A stretch of DNA of 64,000 nt from Lepidodermella squamata (lineage: Eukaryota > Animalia > Gastrotricha): positions 558,001 to 622,000 of the forward strand of contig JBLDXI010000010.1 in assembly GCA_047495785.1 (NCBI GenBank). Direction: 5' to 3'. The stretch's first letter is position 1; each line of letters opens with the position of its first letter. The position numbers and the translations under genes were made by a program. The notes under the pieces were generated by a model. It searched no databases. It had not been told where the DNA came from and was given only the letters and a program-made list of their open reading frames with translations. Shown piece after piece: positions 1-34,561 of the stretch.

Positions 1-1244
1 CACGAGGATCCGTTTGGGACAAAACAGAAGAGAATGAGAGGAGGCTGGTTGAAAATACTCGAAGACAAATTCTGACCGATTTGCTTGAGTTTCTTTTGCT
101 AAGCGCGCATTTTTCGTGGAATGAATCTGATCTCAACAGAGTGAAAACCACGTTAGCGAACATCAGATGCAAAAATATACGACAGGAAATCGTATGACCA
201 AATGACATAAAAATTTCCGCAATCCTTGAAGTTGATATGCTTTATGTGCTACATCAGATACTACGCCATACTGGTTCAACCCGAACCATAGCGTTCAGTA
301 ACCGCTGCTCCATCAGCTTTTCAACCTAGAAATTTCGAGCCTTCGATGTTGATGATGATCTCCCGCCTCTTGGCGTAGTCAGGGATGGTGCTTTCGCACC
401 TATAACGCCCTTCGCCTGCTTCCCAGCCTAGCAGAAGTAATATTCATACCTGACTTAGTATCAATTTATTATATCAAAAGTAGTACCCATGGGCCAGGGC
501 AATTAGACCCGCTAAAAATGTCACCCCAACCAACTGAAATAAGATTACAGGCATGCTGGTTCATCATAAAGCATCAGAAAAAGGTTAAACATGAATGAAG
601 TATTTTTTTACTACTGTTAAATAAAATCAGTCACCATCTGGCATGCGGGCACGAGCGCTTCCTGCTATAACCGAGTTCTTTTTAAGAATAACCGTATTTA
701 AGACACGCTATTCCACTCACTTTTTCATAAATTATTATTTTTTTTCAATTTTCAGCCGTGTTTATTCGCGATATCCTCAGCAATCCAGCCTGAACAAATG
801 TTCTCATGATTTAACCTCGTATTTCTTGCGTAGCAGCATTTTAATATGGGAATCTCGGGAAATTTCTTTACGAGTCTTGAATATCCGGTAATCCGCTAAC
901 TACAGCTGGTTGCCGATCTCTCACCAAGCCGATTTTTGCAAAATTCTCATTAACCAGCCGCATGGGAATCTAAACTAATCACTAATGAAACGAATGAAAT
1001 TTATGGCATGATAGTAATTACTTTTATTGTATTTAAATTTTATTATGGCTCAATATTTTAAATTTTCTGATTTTTTTCCATCTCATTTTGCTTTGCAGGG
1101 GGCTTTTTATTTCACTCATGAGGGACTAACAGGATTTCGCAGGGGCTTTACTCCAGGCAAATTTTTCAGGGGATTTGTACTTTTGCTTGTTTTACCAATA
1201 TTTATATTTAGATCAGTACTATTTATTATTTATTGTAATTTGAA

Positions 1245-4184
1245 ATGTTCGGTGGTTCACTTTCAATACAAACAATCTTGTCGATTGTTGTTGTTGGAAC
1301 GGTGAGTTAATCAAGTTCACCAAGTACTTCAATCAAGTTTTAACTTTTTATGGTTTTAGCTAGCAGCTGGCGAGTTTGAAGAGGTCCGGCAACAGCTTCA
1401 TTGGTTGGACTCCGAGTCGAGAAAAGATCGTGGCCTTATCCCAGTAATTTTCTTTACATTGGTATTCATGTTAAAGGTATGACGAATATCGCCTTGTTTC
1501 AGGTGCCGCTGGAGAAATTTGTTGTTAAACCCAACCGCATCTGGGTTGCCCAGGCGCCTCATCGTTACAACAGACGCATGATGGAAAAAGATCCCGACAT
1601 GACTCCTCTAGTCTCTGCGCTGGTGCTTGGAGATTTCGGCGGCCTGCCGTCTGTGCTGGTGGCCATCAAATTTGGCGAGGGCACAAGTAATTCTACTGAA
1701 CAAGAATAAGTAAGGCTTATAGACAGATTTTTTTATTCAGGTGAAGCTTTCAAGAACCGCTACATATCTGTATTCGAAAACTATAAACAAGAAACCTGCC
1801 TTGATTTCGTTATACTGGAAGCCAATAGCACCGTCACGCCAACTGCTGTTATTAACGAAATTGGCCTCGAGTATTTTGACATATTTCTGAAATGCGCCTG
1901 AATTCTTGAGTTTGCATTTGACACAGTGAACAATCTGATTCCGTGGTGGAGGGAACAACCTACATATATAGCGTAAACATAGAGGTATTGTTTACATTTT
2001 CAGAAAAAAATATGTGCTTAAATGTTTTTAATTCCAGCAATCTCATCCGATTGTGGCGGACACTGTCTATTTGGTAATGCATCACTTTGCGTACGATATC
2101 GTTTATTTAACTATTTGTTTGTCAGATGGCCGAGCATTACCGGTACGACCGGGATAATTACCTCAGCATCATGCAATACACCGAGTAAGCATTGACTTTT
2201 GTCCAAGAAAATTGTCTAATTTCTTCCTTTTCACAGCTTCACCTCTGATTTTTACGAGGCGAAGAATAGCTACGGCGTGCCATTCGACTACGGCTCGGCG
2301 ACCATGTCACACCCTCTCGAGGACGGTGGGGATTTCCAGCCGAAAGACTGGCGCTACGCGGGTGCTATGAATGCGCCTTTCACGTCGTTCAACAACTTTA
2401 AAACGCTCAACTTCAAGTACAACTGTTCAGGTTCGACGATATAATTACAGTTTACAACTGTGGCTTTTATTCTCTCGAGATAAAATAGGCCTAAATTTGG
2501 CTAACTGTTAATTAATCCTGATAATACTGTTTTTAGCCAATTGTAGCGGAACAGCTCCAGATTGCAAATTCGGTGGATATCGAGATCCTAAAAATTGCGG
2601 TCGCTGCAAATGCCCACCTGGCTTCGGCGGCCCAACTTGCGAGAAACAGCCTCCATTTGGCAACGAGGCGTGCGGTGGAGTCATCAATTTACCAGCCTGC
2701 ACTTCGGTCGAGATAACTTCACCCAACTACCCGAACCCTTACGTCGCTTTTAGCAGTTGCACGTGGTGGGTTGTTAGCTCTCAGGTAAATTTTCAAATAT
2801 ATTTGTGAAGTAAAGCATTATTTTCAACACCTAGCCTGGTACTGTGTTCGGTTTTGACGGGAGACCAGATTTAACGCAAGGAAGAAGTGAGATTTTCTTC
2901 GATGACCTTTCATTTACATACGTTTCGTTTACAGCTGTCAGTAGCTATTCATTAATCGATACCGCTTGTGCCGACTACGTCGAGTTTCGCGATCCAACCG
3001 ATGGCACCCAGCCGTATTTCCGCTACTGCTCTTACGGCGCAACAGCTGGAAAGGTCTACGAGAGCTCTACAAACAAGGCCATCGTCTACTTCAAGTCAAA
3101 CTCGCCAACCCCAGGCAAGGGGTTCCATTTGATTGCTCGATCAAGTTGCCCAAGTGACAACAAAGCGGAGCTAAGGCTGACTCCTAGCGGCTACGACTAT
3201 GAGGGCTTTGTTTCTACGACACAATCAGGAGCTACGTGCCAGCCGTGGCCTCAGCTCGACTGGATAGCAGACTACATTGAAATGCTCAAGTTCCCAAGAG
3301 GCCTCAACCTTAATCACAGCAACTACTGCCGCAATCCTGAATCACTTCCGACAGGACCTTACTGTTTCATCGATGCAGCGCGGACGCAGACTGAAACATG
3401 CAATATAACGATAACCCCGCTGGCAGTACCGATTTCACGTGAGTGTTCAAATGATAATTAGATCCCCGAAATAGTCGAGCTAATTGCTTAATTGTGGTTT
3501 TTGCAGCGCTCATCCTGTCACGATGCGTCGCATCTGCGACTGGCGTGTGGCGCGGCTGTCGCTCCAGCTGCTCAGCCGATGAGTACGCGCTCAAGGGATC
3601 GATCAAACACGTTGCAAAGAACTGCAACAGAGGGGTGAATTTTAGTCAACAGTCAATCTATTTTCGTAATAATCTTCTGCATTGTCATTATCCAATATCA
3701 GCCAGCTAGAAAGTGCATGAATCGAGAAACCGGAGATTTTCGATGCATTGGTAACGATATGAAGTGCACTGAAAGCGAAACAGTATGTGCCACAAATAAC
3801 TGCATATATGTTGCTTACCAGCGCATTCTCTGTTTTCAGACCGAAATCTACCGAGTTTACATTTTGTTCCGTCGCAACTGGATCCACTGCCAGCATAAAC
3901 GCGGAATGGTTTGAAATGATATCTTATGCTCAACTGACATGTCTTCTTGTGCTTGTATCAGAAATACGTAAGGTGCTTCGATGACAAGACACGTCGCTTC
4001 AAAGATTGCCGTCGCAAGGATTTAGGCTGCCATGCCGATGAGGTAACGCTATCACCGCTCTCGAATTGGTCTCATCTTGACCTGATGTAATCATTACTAG
4101 ATTCCGATCGGCCTAACCTACTTTGATCCAGTCACGTGTTACAAGAAAATTCGACGCATCGTTGTTCCTGACGACGAAGTTTAA
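1245..4184 (+). CDS. Multi-exon secreted astacin-like (probably inactive) protein: signal peptide - astacin fold - EGF - CUB - kringle - 3 Cys-rich repeats
   Basis: Hand-spliced: MFGGSLSIQTILSIVVVGT (1245-1301); astacin-type segments TCLDF, AEHYRYDRDNY (2126-), YGVPFDYGS; EGF CKFGGYRDPKNCGRCKCPPGFGGPTC; CUB CGGVI..ITSPNYP..CTW..DYVEFRD..GKGF; kringle DYEGFVSTTQSGATCQPW..NYCRNP..GPYCF; last exon ends VVPDDEV* at 4184. Some internal exon boundaries are uncertain. Confidence 0.8.
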
Positions 4185-25082: not shown

Positions 25083-25312
25083 GTATTAATTAAGAAATGG
25101 CCGGCAACAATATTTTATTCGTTTCGCAATTAATTTCAATTAATTTGAATTTTAATTGTTGCAGGCAGTTTTGGCGAGAACTAGATGTTCTCATCTTTTA
25201 CGATGTTTACGATGAACTAGTCAAGAAATTTATTTGTCGTAAAATTATTTTGGTCAATCATCGACGCTTTCTTCTAATTTGGGATAACATTGAGAGTCGA
25301 ATTTTTTCGCAG

Positions 25313-27958
25313 GTTGTTTCAGCGAGAACGGGACCTTTTCGCTCAACTTGGAACATCCGTCGATACGCGACCAAATCGACGGAGCTATGGTCAACCGCTG
25401 TAACTGCTTTACATCCTCTGTCAACACTGGCAGGCGAAGCTGCACCGAAAAGGTTCCATAAAAGCTTCGAAATCGATTTCTGCCGCAATCACTTGCGCAA
25501 ACCTTCGAAAGCTAGTTACAAGCTGATCGGGAATACTCTGGAAATCAGCAAAGACGGGTCAGCAATTTTCAACATTAGCAGGAATGATGAAGCCACATTA
25601 AATGGCAAAATCACAGCTTTGGGCAAAGACGGAAACATTGTTCACGTTCGAATCGATACGGCCGAAATTACGAAACCGCGATTTGAGTTACAGCGCGATG
25701 ACGTTGTTACATCAACTGCCTTATCGAGCCGTCATCACAACTACCGTTTACAAACTGATGATGAGAAACTTTCGACTATCATCAATGGAGATTCGAAGAT
25801 TGTGATCAACCACGAACCATTCAGTCTCAATTTCACAAATGAAACTGGCGAATCTGTTCTTTCAATCAACGCCGAAGAAAAGCTGGAAGTTGGAGGTGAA
25901 GATGGAGCAATTTCGGGCGATTTCTTTTTCCCTGACTCGCGAAGCTTGTACGGCTTAGCTGAACATGCAGATTCATTTCGTTTGAAAGAAACGATTGGCG
26001 TTGAACCTTATCGACTATTCAACTGCGATTCTTTCAGTTACAAACTCGAATACCGTGGTTCTTTGTACGGCTCGATTCCGTTGCTGATCGCGCCTAAAAG
26101 GGGCGGAGCTTGCTGCGGCGTGTTCTGGTTAAACTCGTCCGATACTTGGGTTGACATCGACTATCGAAACGAACGATCGTCGTCGTCTCAATTCATCTCA
26201 GAGTGTGGAGTTTTCGATGTTTACGTCTTGTTAGGTCCGAAAATTGGCGATGTTTTACGTCAATATCTCTTCCTGACTGGGACTACGCCGTTACCACCAC
26301 TTTTCGCTCTGGGCTACCACCAGTCGCGCTGGAACTACACTGACCAAGCCGACGTGCTTCAAGTAAACGAAAGTTTGGCGAAAAATGATATTCCCTGTGA
26401 CGTCATTTGGCTTGATATCGAGTATACGGATGCTAGAAAGTACTTCACCTGGAACAAAACAAAATTCCCTGATCCATTGGCAATGTTGGAGGAATTGGAG
26501 GAGAAAGGCCGTCGTTTGGTGACAATCGTCGATCCACATCTTAAGAAGGACCCTAGCTACTCAAAGTACGCAGAAGCTAGCTCGAAGGACTACTTCGTGA
26601 AAGACCCAGTGACGGGAGAAGACTACGTCGCAGAATGCTGGCCAGGTGCCTCATGTTGGCCAGATTTCACGCGGCAAGACGTCCGCCATTGGTGGGCCGA
26701 CCAATTCAGCTTTGCGAACTACCCGCTGACAAATGACCGGGTCTACATTTGGAACGATATGAACGAGCCTTCAGTTTTTAAAGGTGTTGAATCAACGTTC
26801 CCGAAGGGAGTCCTCCATGCTAACAACGTCGAAAATCGCCAGGTTCATAATCTGTACGGCCACTACCAGGCAATGGGTACATTCAATGGCCTTCTGAATC
26901 GTGGTGAGGGACAAAAGCGGCCTTTCGTTCTTACAAGGTCATTTTTCGCCGGGACGCAACGATTTTCGGCAGTTTGGACAGGCGATAACGTTGCTGAATG
27001 GAAATATCTGCAGGCGTCGATTTCAATGCTTTTGAGCCTTAGTGTTTCCGGGGTAGCATTTTGCGGTTCTGATGTCGGTGGGTTTGTTAACGAACCGGAT
27101 GAAGAACTTCTTACTCGGTGGTACCAAGCCGCAGCGTTCCAACCATTCTTTCGAGAGCATTCGTTTGGAAAACGTCGCGAACCTTGGCTCTTCTCACCTC
27201 GAACCAACAAACGACTTCAAAATGCGATCAGGTTACGTTACACCTATCTGCCGTATTGGTACACCCTGTTCTACGAGCATGAGATGAAAAACGGTCTGTC
27301 ACCGATGAGGCCGATGTGGGCGGAATTCGCTGAGGAAGTCGAGACATTCACTGATGAAAGTTCGTTTCTAGTGGGCGATGCGCTGTTAGTGCATCCTGTT
27401 TGCAGGTCAGGCGTGAAATTTGAGCAAATTTACCTGCCAGGCAAAAGTACGCTCTGGTACCGGGCAGATCGATGGAGCTGTGTTCGCGGTGGTAAATCGT
27501 TCGTCGAGAAGCTTCTCATCGATCGCATTCCCGTTTTCCAACGCGGCGGAACTATAATCCCACGTTGGATTAATCCGAAACAGTCGTCTGAATCCATGGC
27601 TAACGGAACATTTGCTTTGATCGTTTGCCTTGATGGCAATGGCTCAGCTAGTGGTAATTTCTTCACTGACGATTTTGATGGTTACGCCTATCGATCGGGT
27701 GGTGGCTCTTACTTTTACTTCTCTTTTGCCAACTCAACGTTTTGTTTTAAAAATACGTCAACGGCGGGACAGGCTGTTTTTATCGACAAAATTGTTGTTG
27801 CCGGATTGCTGGACGAGCCGCGGGGTGCAGTTTTAACGCGAGATGCTAAGAAATCATTCTTGCCGCTAGTCTGGAACGAATCGAGGCATTTTGTCGAGCT
27901 CCTGCTGTCTTCACAAGAAGTTCACCTGGGAACGAAATTCGAAATTTCTTTGTGCTAA
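25313..27958 (+). CDS. GH31 neutral alpha-glucosidase, tandem copy 2 (start codon unresolved)
   Basis: Colinear with copy 1 from acceptor TTTTTTCGCAG (25312); catalytic motifs intact (WNDMNEP, WTGDN); the ATG used by copy 1 reads TCG here. Confidence 0.85.
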   Translation, partial: VVSARTGPFRSTWNIRRYATKSTELWSTAVTALHPLSTLAGEAAPKRFHKSFEIDFCRNHLRKPSKASYKLIGNTLEISKDGSAIFNISRNDEATLNGKITALGKDGNIVHVRIDTAEITKPRFELQRDDVVTSTALSSRHHNYRLQTDDEKLSTIINGDSKIVINHEPFSLNFTNETGESVLSINAEEKLEVGGEDGAISGDFFFPDSRSLYGLAEHADSFRLKETIGVEPYRLFNCDSFSYKLEYRGSLYGSIPLLIAPKRGGACCGVFWLNSSDTWVDIDYRNERSSSSQFISECGVFDVYVLLGPKIGDVLRQYLFLTGTTPLPPLFALGYHQSRWNYTDQADVLQVNESLAKNDIPCDVIWLDIEYTDARKYFTWNKTKFPDPLAMLEELEEKGRRLVTIVDPHLKKDPSYSKYAEASSKDYFVKDPVTGEDYVAECWPGASCWPDFTRQDVRHWWADQFSFANYPLTNDRVYIWNDMNEPSVFKGVESTFPKGVLHANNVENRQVHNLYGHYQAMGTFNGLLNRGEGQKRPFVLTRSFFAGTQRFSAVWTGDNVAEWKYLQASISMLLSLSVSGVAFCGSDVGGFVNEPDEELLTRWYQAAAFQPFFREHSFGKRREPWLFSPRTNKRLQNAIRLRYTYLPYWYTLFYEHEMKNGLSPMRPMWAEFAEEVETFTDESSFLVGDALLVHPVCRSGVKFEQIYLPGKSTLWYRADRWSCVRGGKSFVEKLLIDRIPVFQRGGTIIPRWINPKQSSESMANGTFALIVCLDGNGSASGNFFTDDFDGYAYRSGGGSYFYFSFANSTFCFKNTSTAGQAVFIDKIVVAGLLDEPRGAVLTRDAKKSFLPLVWNESRHFVELLLSSQEVHLGTKFEISLC

Positions 27959-30777: not shown

Positions 30778-31838
30778 ATGAATATTACGATAAAGGCATT
30801 AGTTGGAATTTTCTTTCTACTGGCGCTTCTCTTCGTCTCACTGCCATCAAATTTGTTTCTTGTTACTTCTACGGTTGCTTTCGCGATATTCTTATCAGTG
30901 TTTTCAACGATGGAAAGTGTCTCTAATGCAGAAGATGTGAGCCCTCCACCCCCCTCAACTACTGAAGCGGCATCTGAACAGGTTAGAAACAATTAGTTGC
31001 AAAAATTAAAATTATAGAACAATATTTTCAGAATCTTCGTCGAATCTTGGTATTTGGTTCTTCTCAAGTTGGAAAAACTGAAATGATAAACGTTTTGACT
31101 GGCCTCTTTGGAACAGAAAATGCGCGTAAAACGGGGGACAAATGCGTTGGATGTACCTTCGATTCTTACGAATTCGATCCAGTGCCAGATCCTAATGGAA
31201 AGTGTTTATATCAATTTATTGACACTGCGGGATTAAATGAAGCAGATACTACCGTTACCGTTATTGGACCAGAAGCGATTAAAAAATTGGTGAAACTCCT
31301 AGCCCACCCGACCGGTTACAATCTAATCATTATGGTTATTAAAAAGAATGTGATATTGAGGTCTACAAAAGCTAACTACGAACTTATCAAGACTTTTGCG
31401 CATGGATCAATCCCAGTGATATTGGTAGTAACCTTTTGCGAGACAAAGGCGAAATTGGGTACATGGGTCAAAGAAAACAATGACATGTTGAAGAATAATC
31501 ATCGCATGATCTTTCATAAAGATTGCGTTATTGGTACTGGCGCATGGGGAAAAGCAGAAGATCCAGCTTATGAGGCTTTATCTCCACCGAAACGCGACAA
31601 GTCAAAGAAGAAAGTTTGGAAACGTATCGTTCTTCATAGTTTAGATAAATCAGTTCAAATTCCATTTGACAACTTCGTGGAAACTTTGAAGTTCGCATAT
31701 AACTACGTTGCTTTGAAATTCTCGCTTCCTGATCGCTTGCTTATCCAAGGTCAGTATGTTCCTGTAATGATGGCGGCCGGTGTTCCTGAAAAGGAGGCCG
31801 TAGAACTTACACAAGATATTCTAAAAGAAAAAATATAA
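30778..31838 (+). CDS. P-loop GTPase of the AIG1/septin-like TRAFAC group, 2 exons, possibly with an N-terminal hydrophobic anchor
   Basis: Exon 1 ends 30981 (ATG at 30778 or 30910), exon 2 is 31032-31838. G1 GSSQVGKT, G2 GCTF, G3 FIDTAG, G4-like VVTFCE. Confidence 0.8.
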
Positions 31839-32301
31839 CTTCAATCATTGTCTAACAGCTTGATATATTCGCTCAGCGATGGCTTGCGTGTTGATTATAT
31901 TAAAGGCTTCAAAAACTGTTATTACGGAGCGTTAATACGCTTTTCAAGAATATAAATTTTACACGTCGTGTGTTTATACTTTATCGCGGAAATTTCAGAA
32001 CACTGATAGAATTACGAAAACTTTGATATTGAGAGCAAACAGTTTTGTATTCGGTACTGGTTATCTGATGTCTATCTGTCCCATGTTCATCCATAAAGGA
32101 ATATTTTCTGCTGAAAAAGTATTGTTAATGGGGATGACATTTTGCTATTATTTATTCATTCGATGATTGACACGTCTCTATTTTCACCGAACATTCAACG
32201 AGGGATCGAGAAAGGTTTATAAATCGTGCAGATTTCAAAGCTCTGTCAACTGTAAAATAAAACCAAACCAGAGGTGGTTAGAATCGTTGAAAAACGTGAC
32301 C

Positions 32302-34561
32302 TCACTGTACTCGGCAAAGCTTGCGTTGGGGTTTCTTGTCTTGTTTGTCCCGCGATGCTTCAGGAGGTTGAACAGAGACCTCTGCATCAGCCATTTTGCC
32401 CTTAGCAATACTTGCTAGCTCGTCTTCGTGCCAACCCCTCAGGAAGTCGAGCTCTGTGTCTGTCAGCTTATCGAATCGCGTTTCAAGGCCACAAACTTCA
32501 CACATGCGGCACTTGCTGCATTCAGGCAAATGCTTGGCAAGTAAATCATCGAGCGACGCGTTTTTCTCAGTGGCGAATAGTTTGCGCCAAAGGTGGCAAG
32601 TCTTACGTTGACAGAAAAACTCATGAACCTGCATGCGATAGAGTCGTTGTCCGGCTAAGACGGCTTTTAAATCAATGCTAGGCTCACTATTTTCATCAGA
32701 TGGCACATTATCAGCAGATTCCTCCAAATTTGGCTCTTTAGGTTCGTCATATACTGGGATCGCTTTCAACGCAGCGATTTCATCAGCTATCATTTGGATC
32801 CCTGGGGAGCAAACGGCATCATAAATTGGGATTGTTGAAGAAAGCTTTTGTACCTGATTTGACTTGGATGTTCCGAACGACTTCAAAGAAGAATCGAGGC
32901 GCTTGCAGCCCCTTAATGGCTGACAGGACCTTTTGCCTAGTATTTTGCCTGAGTTGGTTGCCTCGCGCCGGGTCAACGTCGTAAATAGGATTCGGGTTAT
33001 CGATTAAGCATACACGATCACGGCAACGCTTTAGCATAGAAGCGAAAAATGGCAGATGAGCCGCCTGCTGTTTGATCCACTTTTTCTGAGCCTCCTCGCT
33101 AGGATGGAGAGTCAGCGGTTCGTTGCCTTGTGTCAGCACAATGACAACATTGTTGCAACACGCTTCACCGAACATGTTCACCATGAATTCGAACGTCCTC
33201 GCTTGTTCCTGTGTCATTCGATTGGCTGGCATACAGAACAGAATGACGTCGATTCCTTCCTCCAGAGTTCCAAGGGCATCACGAAGTCGATCCTGCACCA
33301 CTGCATCAACTTCATTCGTGTCGTTCGACCCCATAGTGTCTATAAGCGAAAGATGCTCCTCGAGTATTCGGTAGCTTGAGTGCAATTTGGTTTCCGAGTA
33401 CATGTTACAGCTAGTTGGAAATGCCTCCTGACACCCGATCAGCGTGTTGCCTAGATTCGACTTTCCGGCACCCGTGCCGCCTATCAACAGCGCAGTTCTG
33501 AACTTTTTCTGCAAAGCTATGCAGGTTCGATGCTCGAGCGTAGCTGCGGCTGAAAATCGCTGGGTTGGGTCCTTTCGTAGAAGCCTGCGACATCGACAGT
33601 AAATTGAAAGATAGCATAGGATATAAAGAAAGCTTACGGTTCCAGCAGGTTGTCGAGATTGTCGCTTATATGTTTCAGCGACGGCCGCTCGCCATTCACT
33701 ATCCTCTCAGTTAGCTGCTCCTCAGTGGTTCCTACGAACGCAAACTGGCCAGTTAGCATTTCATACAGAATGCAGCCGAGCGACCACATGTCCGTCTTCT
33801 CATCGTAGCCAGTATTACTGCGGCTTTTGCCCTGTAGCCAATCGCGAACCACTTCAGGGCTCATATACGCTGGGGAGCCTCGAATAGTTGCAGCTAAGCT
33901 CCCCTTCTTCAATCGTCGGCTCTCTCCGAAATCGACTATTTTGGCGAAGCCATGCTTCATCATGATGTTACTTTTAGCAAAAGAGAAAAGCCAACTTCAT
34001 GGTCGATCCAAAATACAACACATGTTTTACTTACCTTGGCTTGAGGTCTCTATGGATAATCAATTTCTTATGAAGGAAGGCTACGCCCGATATAAGTTGG
34101 TAAAATGCGTCCATTGCAATGTCGACTCTCGTTTGTTCATTGAGACTATCGTTCGCGAATAGACCTTCTGTAAAGTCCTCCAGCGTTTCATGACAATACT
34201 CCAGAACCAATGCCTCGATACCGCCACTTGGAAACATTCCCATTAACTGAGCGACGTAACGACAGTTACCAAGTCGTTGTAGCATGAGAATTTCTTTGTT
34301 GCTAAGATATTTTCGCGGTACGAATTTGATAGCTCTTAGTCGTCTATCCTCAAGCTTTTCTTCGTCATCGCTTGTTTTTCTGGCGAGCAAATCTTCAGCT
34401 TTGAAGACGACTCCGTACGATCCCTCGCCGATTTTCTCCAGCAGCCTGTATCGCTTGCCAGGACCGGTTTCTATCCCAGGTTGCAGAGCATCAATCGATG
34501 AGAGGTCTGATTCGATTCGTCTCACCTGCGCTTGCACGCTCCCTCTCTTCTGTTCAGTCAT
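32302..34561 (-). CDS. Ser/Thr protein kinase - AIG1/GIMAP-like GTPase - His/Cys-rich domain fusion protein (about 696 aa, 4 exons)
   Basis: Exons 34561-34035, 33970-33638, 33584-32854, 32801-32302 joined by GT-AG introns of 64, 53 and 52 nt in consistent phase (2091 nt). Kinase GEGSYG, AIK, HRDLKPSN, DFG, SPE, DMWSLG; GTPase GGTGAGKS, LIDTMG, VLTQGN, CRDRVCLIDN. Confidence 0.88.

Follow-up and report, generated by a model that had tools for sequence, protein, structure and literature searches.

Does a single animal gene join a complete protein kinase to a GTPase of the AIG1/GIMAP family, and what could such a protein do? A locus of the gastrotrich Lepidodermella squamata raises this question. 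It lies in a stretch of 64,000 nucleotides (nt) of contig JBLDXI010000010.1 (assembly GCA_047495785.1, positions 558,001 to 622,000), which is called the window below and within which all coordinates are given. In the list of open reading frames (ORFs) of the window the locus is split into four ORFs, 34031-34561, 33634-33963, 32819-33514 and 32302-32976, the whole on the minus strand. In this work we show that these ORFs are the pieces of one real, transcribed, four-exon animal gene that encodes a protein of 696 residues. From its N- to its C-terminus this protein reads as a kinase, an AIG1-type GTPase, a predicted metal module made of His and Cys residues (His/Cys module) and a CaaX box, and the best explanation of the locus is in our view a single protein with these four parts that probably acts as a kinase switch controlled by GTP and by the membrane.

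Reading of the minus strand and a scripted recomputation lead to four exons in one frame of 2091 nt, that is, 696 codons and a TGA stop, with introns of 64, 53 and 52 nt that all have GT..AG ends. An in-frame TAA at 34564-34562 stands immediately 5' of the initiating ATG. The parts of the gene are the following.

34561-34035, minus strand: exon 1, with the ATG at 34561, a 37-residue N-terminal lead, the kinase N-lobe and the catalytic loop to HRDLKP; it ends in phase 2
34034-33971, minus strand: intron 1, 64 nt, GTAAGT..AAAAG, which interrupts the catalytic loop between HRDLKP and SN
33970-33638, minus strand: exon 2, the kinase C-lobe with DFG, the activation segment, SPE and DMWSLG
33637-33585, minus strand: intron 2, 53 nt, GTAAGC..CGCAG, phase 2
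33584-32854, minus strand: exon 3, the last kinase helix LLRKDPTQRFSAAATLEH, about 5 linker residues and the entire AIG1 GTPase domain
32853-32802, minus strand: intron 3, 52 nt, GTACAA..CCCCAG, phase 1, placed by its canonical ends and by the joining of the frames
32801-32302, minus strand: exon 4, an acidic linker, the His/Cys module, a helical stretch, a polybasic run and the CaaX box, with the TGA stop at 32304-32302

The original prediction, made from the letters of the window, had joined the four ORFs into one frame of about 696 amino acids through three GT..AG introns of 52-64 nt, and the recomputed model agrees with it exactly. The motifs that it quoted are likewise all found at the places it gave: GEGSYG, AIK, HRDLKP/SN (split by intron 1), DFG, SPE, GGTGAGKS, DTMG and LTQGN, as well as CRDRVCLIDN, HEFFCQRKTC and HLPECSKCRMCEVC.

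Two sequencing runs contain the stretch, one of complementary DNA (cDNA) type, X1, and one of DNA type, X2. The cDNA nature of X1 is visible from the SMART oligo present as a loose end, and from its coverage, which ends near 34526 where X2 continues upstream. Two X1 contigs omit exactly 64 nt, passing from 33970 to 34035 (CT..AC ends on the plus strand), and two X1 contigs omit 53 nt between 33583 and 33637; contigs that skip intron 1 or 2 with GT..AG ends on the gene strand occur in X1 only. This exact omission demonstrates the splicing of both introns. Exon 4 is also covered by X1, and the entire region is covered by X2. At least some of the spliced X1 contigs originate from a second copy of the whole gene (32300-34560), about 8-10% divergent and present in both X1 and X2, which could be an allele, an ohnologue or a recent duplicate. 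Among the 36 listed exonic differences between the copies, 28 fall on codon position 3 (p = 6e-8), and this third-position excess indicates that both copies are under purifying selection in the frame of the model. Opposite-strand joints were observed in X1 contigs at 32016-32108 and at 34244-34418, together with a strand flip at 32815 inside intron 3; these joints look like cDNA or assembly chimeras, and X1 contigs need careful reading.

The first half of the protein carries the kinase. Family, structure and sequence searches were made exon by exon, on separate pieces. Pfam Pkinase (PF00069, cut-off 31.7 bits) matches exon 1 with 8e-16 and 58.6 bits over profile positions 1-126, and exon 2 with 3e-22 and 79.7 bits over positions 128-233, the profile running on across intron 1. 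The set of catalytic residues is complete, from the Gly loop GEGSYG and the beta3 Lys (AIK) through HRDLKPSN, DFG, SPE and DMWSLG to the subdomain XI Arg in KDPTQRF. The kinase had been called intact, which these matches above the cut-off and the full set of residues bear out, and because all catalytic residues are present it looks active. The nearest solved kinases are weak matches, CDK5 and CDK2 for the N-lobe (exon 1) and RAD53, PKA and ULK1, at about 1e-12, for the C-lobe (exon 2); to judge by its residues, the domain is an intact Ser/Thr kinase with no recognisable subfamily. Exon 3 passes from the last kinase helix, via the linker of about 5 residues, into the first GTPase strand and the P-loop. 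Since the kinase C-terminus (KDPTQRFSA) and the P-loop thus sit on one exon, the fusion is no artefact of splicing, as had been argued from the start, and the same arrangement is found in a homologue, on contig L001, described below.

The GTPase domain occupies the remainder of exon 3, with the following landmarks.

33458-33481, minus strand: P-loop GGTGAGKS (G1)
33329-33340, minus strand: DTMG (G3)
33212-33226, minus strand: ANRMT of the conserved box, aligned with LGRYT of GIMAP7
33122-33136, minus strand: LTQGN, the G4 region
32996-33025, minus strand: CRDRVCLIDN, a motif in the AIG1 domain

Pfam AIG1 (PF04548) is the best-scoring GTPase family on exon 3 (2e-20, 73.5 bits, cut-off 27), followed by MMR_HSR1 with 30.8 bits, and neither Roc nor COR has a Pfam match on exon 3 or exon 4 at E<=1. 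The sequence matches of exon 3 in the PDB are GIMAP4, GIMAP7, GIMAP1 and Toc34. The assignment of this domain to the AIG1/GIMAP type, and not to Roc, therefore stands. G1, G2 and G3 can all be read (GGTGAGKS, SETK and DTMG), and between G3 and G4 the conserved box of the GIMAPs, ILFCMPANRMTQEQARTFEFMVNMFGE, aligns with GIMAP4 and GIMAP7 in the PDB alignments, the Arg of ANRMT lining up with the Arg of GIMAP7 LGRYT. We take the latter to be the catalytic arginine of the GIMAP7 dimer. A review of the family does not confirm this role (PMC8201404).

An exhaustive search with exon 3 in a library of 1.84 billion representatives gave 2234 matches, of which the nearest 150 are P0001 to P0150. By phmmer, no kinase or tail pieces are present within these 150 representatives, among which intron-split fusions are invisible because prokaryote-style gene calling cuts genes at introns; P0015, the best single-domain match of exon 3, is such a case. 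A profile search with exon 3 and P0015 found P0015 only, at E<=1e-10, a threshold too strict for distant kin, and exon 3 had no match in the metagenome scan. On the contigs of P0147, P0018, P0026 and P0060 the AIG1 genes are stand-alone or in tandem, with no kinase nearby. The contig of P0060, a metagenome contig (L002) that is probably of protist origin, carries three adjacent intron-less AIG1 genes at 51-3641, and P0060 itself is rich in coiled coil and ends in a CLMM CaaX box. In the viral-contig scan an AIG1-like stretch, 25% identical over 170 residues, was seen at 79-603 of L011, a contig filed as viral in IMG/VR.

The first 50 or so residues of exon 4 form an acidic linker (12 Asp/Glu in 54 residues), which is followed by two features.

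32491-32625, minus strand: His/Cys module, H-x3-C-x4-C, 21 residues, then H-x3-C-x2-C-x2-C-x2-C
32305-32346, minus strand: polybasic run KQDKKPQRK, then L, then CRVQ at the C-terminus

The His/Cys pattern of the tail had been pointed out originally and is real: both motifs can be read, and all eight ligands, together with one Trp, are invariant between the tail of the window protein and that of L001. Eight ligands would be enough for two Zn ions, which makes this region a predicted metal module. The polybasic CRVQ end was absent from the original prediction. Its Cys stands at position -4 from the C-terminus, as in a CaaX box, and a CaaX box with a final Gln points to farnesylation; the end of the protein is therefore a probable farnesyl membrane anchor. 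A Cys at position -4 is also present in 41 of the 150 nearest AIG1 GTPases, and the CaaX-ended relatives include fish GIMAP8-like proteins, of which the gar one ends in CRVQ, and a protein of the dinoflagellate Polarella glacialis. A CaaX end is thus a recurrent trait of this GTPase neighbourhood, and its presence in exon 4 ties this exon, by indirect evidence, to the GTPase gene. We found nothing in the literature that treats prenylation as a feature of the AIG1 family. The tail otherwise stands apart: it has no match in Pfam (E<=1) or NCBIfam, no PDB sequence match at E<=10, no match in a word search of 5.8 billion, in the metagenome scan or in the viral-contig scan, and the ESM Atlas features search gave no lead. 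A profile made of the two tails, window and L001, matches the L001 ORF alone.

The homologue was reached through P0015, which lies on L001, a 3190-nt genomic Logan contig of run ERR11809031, where the called ORFs upstream include a Pkinase fragment; the proteins of the gene are P0015 and P0153. From the kinase C-lobe on, L001 has the layout kinase, AIG1, His/Cys module and CaaX, the N-lobe being lost at the 5' end of the contig. Its pieces, in order and all on the same strand, are these.

Kinase exon (a), same strand: (S)NVFLLGGTVKIGDFG...SPE...DLW, then a 78-nt intron
Kinase exon (b), same strand: SCGCILYEM..., then a 68-nt intron
GTPase exon, same strand: LVQRIASARMSAADFLE directly into GMTGNGKSS and a full AIG1 domain, then a 219-nt intron
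Tail exon, same strand: IHETRCRRKDC...KHRVSCANCKKCQVC, ending in CSIL and a stop

In piecewise BLASTP against the window exons, the first kinase piece of L001 scores 1e-7, the GTPase exon 4e-34 and the tail 7e-11, while the short second kinase piece gives 0.004 over 9 residues. Two introns are shared. One has its acceptor one base before the codon of the catalytic-loop Asn, in the same position and phase as window intron 1, and the other, in phase 2, lies 11 residues before a common SAA, as window intron 2 does. The L001 intron between GTPase and tail joins the frames with GT..AG ends. The two genes differ in several respects: identity is about 27-33%, L001 has an additional intron in the kinase C-lobe, the linker from GTPase to tail is of different length with its intron at another position, and the CaaX box is CSIL instead of CRVQ. 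CSIL is presumably of the geranylgeranyl type. Common to both genes are a kinase end and a P-loop on one exon, the eight-ligand module and a CaaX end. The two shared introns and the junction on a single exon argue that the layout is inherited and not a local accident, and the window gene and L001 belong to a small kinase-AIG1-module-CaaX family, as yet unstudied. Six window ORFs have no exact match in the protein collection that contains the ORFs of L001, so L001 is probably not from the same strain; it may be a paralogue in a related species. L001 begins with CCCTAA repeats and has TTAGGG-type tracts inside two introns (1-60, 520-560, 1440-1620 and 2871-3089), and downstream, on the other strand, a fragment resembling a retroelement integrase was noticed by eye.

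How could a protein of this kind work? Of the GIMAPs, GIMAP2 forms dimers once it has bound GTP and is believed to build scaffolds on membranes, and GIMAP7 hydrolyses GTP via dimerisation (PMC8201404). In the window protein, a farnesyl group and the basic tail would hold the molecule at the membrane, where GTP binding would lead to dimerisation or oligomerisation of the G domain, like that of GIMAP2 and GIMAP7. The kinase is separated from the G domain by hardly any linker, so that pairing of G domains would bring the kinase domains together and could result in trans-autophosphorylation. The GTP state and the membrane context would in this way be read out as phosphorylation, defence or stress signalling being the most likely setting, and the metal module would probably offer a folded surface for interactions or for dimerisation. 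For such a sequence, a kinase switch under the control of GTP and membrane is plausible, and the Roco-like GTP switch on the kinase that was proposed originally is reasonable functional reasoning, by analogy, and compatible with GIMAP dimerisation (PMC8201404). An immune or stress role would be a guess, based on the reputation of the family.

Several observations weigh against the switch, or against the four-part protein on which it would act. The sequence of the G4 region, LTQGN, departs from the canonical form and varies between relatives, which makes GTP a putative ligand; the closest GTPase in a collection of 15 billion proteins is only 35% identical to exon 3; and the conservation of the layout rests on one homologue, L001, at about 30% identity. 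In addition, no contig joins exon 3 to exon 4. The sole X1 contig at the boundary of exon 3 and intron 3 belongs to the variant copy; it continues for 39 nt into the intron before it changes strand.

Among the alternatives, the one that survives best concerns the direction of control. By phosphorylating its own G domain or tail, the kinase might regulate the GTPase cycle or the binding to membranes; or else the GTPase and the CaaX box might merely localise a constitutively active kinase. The architecture leaves the direction of control unfixed, and the CaaX evidence makes a membrane anchor plausible, both of which speak for reverse control or no control. Nothing speaks directly against it, and the near-absent linker and the dimerisation-driven behaviour of the GIMAPs (PMC8201404) favour the direction from GTPase to kinase only weakly. 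We regard reverse or absent control as possible but rather unlikely, and keep the GTP-controlled kinase as the preferred explanation.

A second alternative, which we consider improbable, is that the protein ends after the GTPase, lacking metal module and lipid anchor, either because intron 3 is retained (the frame then ending in ...VKSGTKAFFNNPNL and a stop) or because exon 4 is a separate small gene. The contig that enters intron 3 and the missing exon 3/exon 4 joint would be expected if this were so, and an in-frame ATG at residue 3 of exon 4 would suit a separate gene. However, X1 contains several strand-flip chimeras, the intron 3 contig among them, and a separate exon 4 gene would have only about 60 nt left for a promoter. 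Within intron 3 the second copy differs by two 3-nt insertions and 4 substitutions, compared with 22 substitutions and no gap in a 268-nt piece of exon 4, so that the indels between the copies are limited to the 52-nt intron. L001, moreover, has the same order of domains, with a GT..AG intron linking the GTPase frame to a homologous tail, and the CaaX box of the tail matches the trait found in 41 of the 150 nearest AIG1 GTPases. From the canonical ends, the joining of the frames, the differences between the copies and the L001 intron, we infer that intron 3 is spliced out and that the tail is part of the protein.

The nature of the metal module leaves room for two further alternatives. The C-x2-C-x2-C-x2-C run could bind an iron-sulfur cluster instead of zinc, which would make the module a redox sensor. 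C-x2-C-x2-C with a further Cys resembles ferredoxin-type cluster motifs, and all four Cys are kept in L001; nevertheless, two tetrahedral Zn sites agree better with the two conserved H-x3-C pairs and the eight ligands, Pfam gives no match of Fer4 type, and we give this idea no more weight than a protein ending after the GTPase. The other proposal, that of the original prediction, was a likeness to TAZ zinc fingers, and it did not hold up. The tail region is predicted helical and both H-x3-C pairs lie at the ends of predicted helices, the sole resemblance to TAZ, in AlphaFold2 models of low confidence (predicted local distance difference test, pLDDT, of 47 for the tail alone and 51 with a two-row alignment). 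Foldseek matches from the low-confidence model are meaningless and included no TAZ entry. Neither zf-TAZ (PF02135) nor any other zinc-finger family matches the tail in Pfam at E<=1, the PDB offers no sequence match for it at E<=10, and in place of three HCCC sites it has two, whose spacing does not fit H-x3-C-x12-C-x4-C, the form that we take the TAZ unit to have. A TAZ-type zinc finger is thus very improbable, and zinc binding by a module of another kind is the reading that we retain. Finally, that the gene model is an artefact of chance ORFs, a pseudogene or a mis-assembly is effectively refuted, hand-built as the joined model is, by the two halves of the Pkinase profile that continue across intron 1, the spliced contigs that back introns 1 and 2, the codon-position bias indicative of purifying selection, the coverage of the whole region by X2, and the homologue L001 with the same layout.

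Is this architecture new? The original prediction implied as much for a kinase followed by an AIG1 domain, and this was too strong. A survey of AIG proteins of the snail Biomphalaria glabrata, published in 2020, lists AIG1 proteins with extra N-terminal Pkinase domains, and a kinase domain with AIG1 was also noted for Atlantic salmon or fungi (PMC7053062). The bare Pkinase-AIG1 domain pair is therefore already recorded, though unstudied. The snail proteins have the same domain order, Pkinase then AIG1; they are a survey entry only, in which neither tail module, CaaX box nor function is described, and the comparison is one by description (PMC7053062). Because no kinase-bearing annotated protein is found among the nearest 150 GTPases, the fusions of the snail and of the window may be independent. 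Our literature search found nothing on the four-part layout, on the His/Cys module, or on CaaX-ended AIG1 GTPases as such.

The window protein shares with the GIMAP/AIG1 (IAN) GTPases (PF04548; GIMAP2/4/7, fish GIMAP8-like proteins and plant AIG1) the G-domain family with its conserved box and Arg, a helical extension at the C-terminus and, by prediction, an end for membrane anchoring; many of these relatives are CaaX-ended too. It differs from them by the complete kinase directly before the G domain and by the His/Cys module, which replaces or interrupts the usual coiled coil. GBP1, GBP2 and GBP5 are large immune-type GTPases that use a C-terminal CaaX box for membrane targeting and oligomerisation; they have this end in common with the window protein, but their G domain is of the dynamin-like GBP type and they carry neither kinase nor metal module. 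The membrane-bound mammalian GIMAPs are held by a transmembrane helix (PMC8201404), whereas the predicted anchor of the window protein is a CaaX box. The ROCO proteins (LRRK1/2, DAPK1 and the Dictyostelium Roco kinases) likewise have GTPase and kinase in one chain, and the proposed logic would be alike, the state of the G domain controlling the kinase; this is an analogy and not family membership, as the window gene has neither Roc nor COR, its order is reversed, with the kinase first, and its GTPase falls in the septin/Toc/AIG1 branch of TRAFAC while that of ROCO falls in the Ras-like branch.

Two other genes of the window were looked at. At 30911-31838 on the plus strand, a two-exon gene lies tail-to-tail to the fusion gene. 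Its product is a small P-loop GTPase that stands alone and has the motifs GSSQVGKT and DTAG; the first exon, 30911-30980, encodes MESVSNAEDV...ASEQ and the intron is about 51 nt long. This GTPase has weak family matches only (MMR_HSR1 1.5e-5, and Roc 3e-4, below the cut-off), no PDB sequence match and no similarity to the adjoining AIG1 domain. Farther away, at 25097-27958 on the plus strand, a 953-codon ORF runs without an intron, which is unusual here, and resembles by eye a family-31 alpha-glucosidase (WNDMNEP); an exact look-up finds no copy of it in the protein collection.

Many animals, plants and protists have expanded sets of GIMAP/AIG1 GTPases, which have been linked to immunity and cell survival; how they act biochemically once GTP is bound is still poorly understood (PMC8201404, PMC7053062). 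A G domain welded to an intact kinase would give this family a directly assayable output, namely kinase activity and its dependence on GTP state, on oligomerisation and on attachment to the membrane. The conserved His/Cys module and the CaaX ends that are frequent in related GTPases offer further points of attack, hardly discussed so far. A broader proposal is that the window gene stands for a conserved, so far undescribed membrane-anchored class in which a built-in kinase is gated directly by oligomers of a GIMAP-type GTPase together with a His/Cys sensor of two metals (or an iron-sulfur cluster), a lineage-specific innate-immune kinase system analogous to ROCO but independent of it. We consider this unlikely as a whole, but if it were true, such a gated kinase would show, in a natural protein, what GIMAP/AIG1 GTPases signal to. 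If the mechanism proposed here for the single gene holds, it would represent a second, independent invention of the ROCO principle, that of a kinase controlled by a GTPase.

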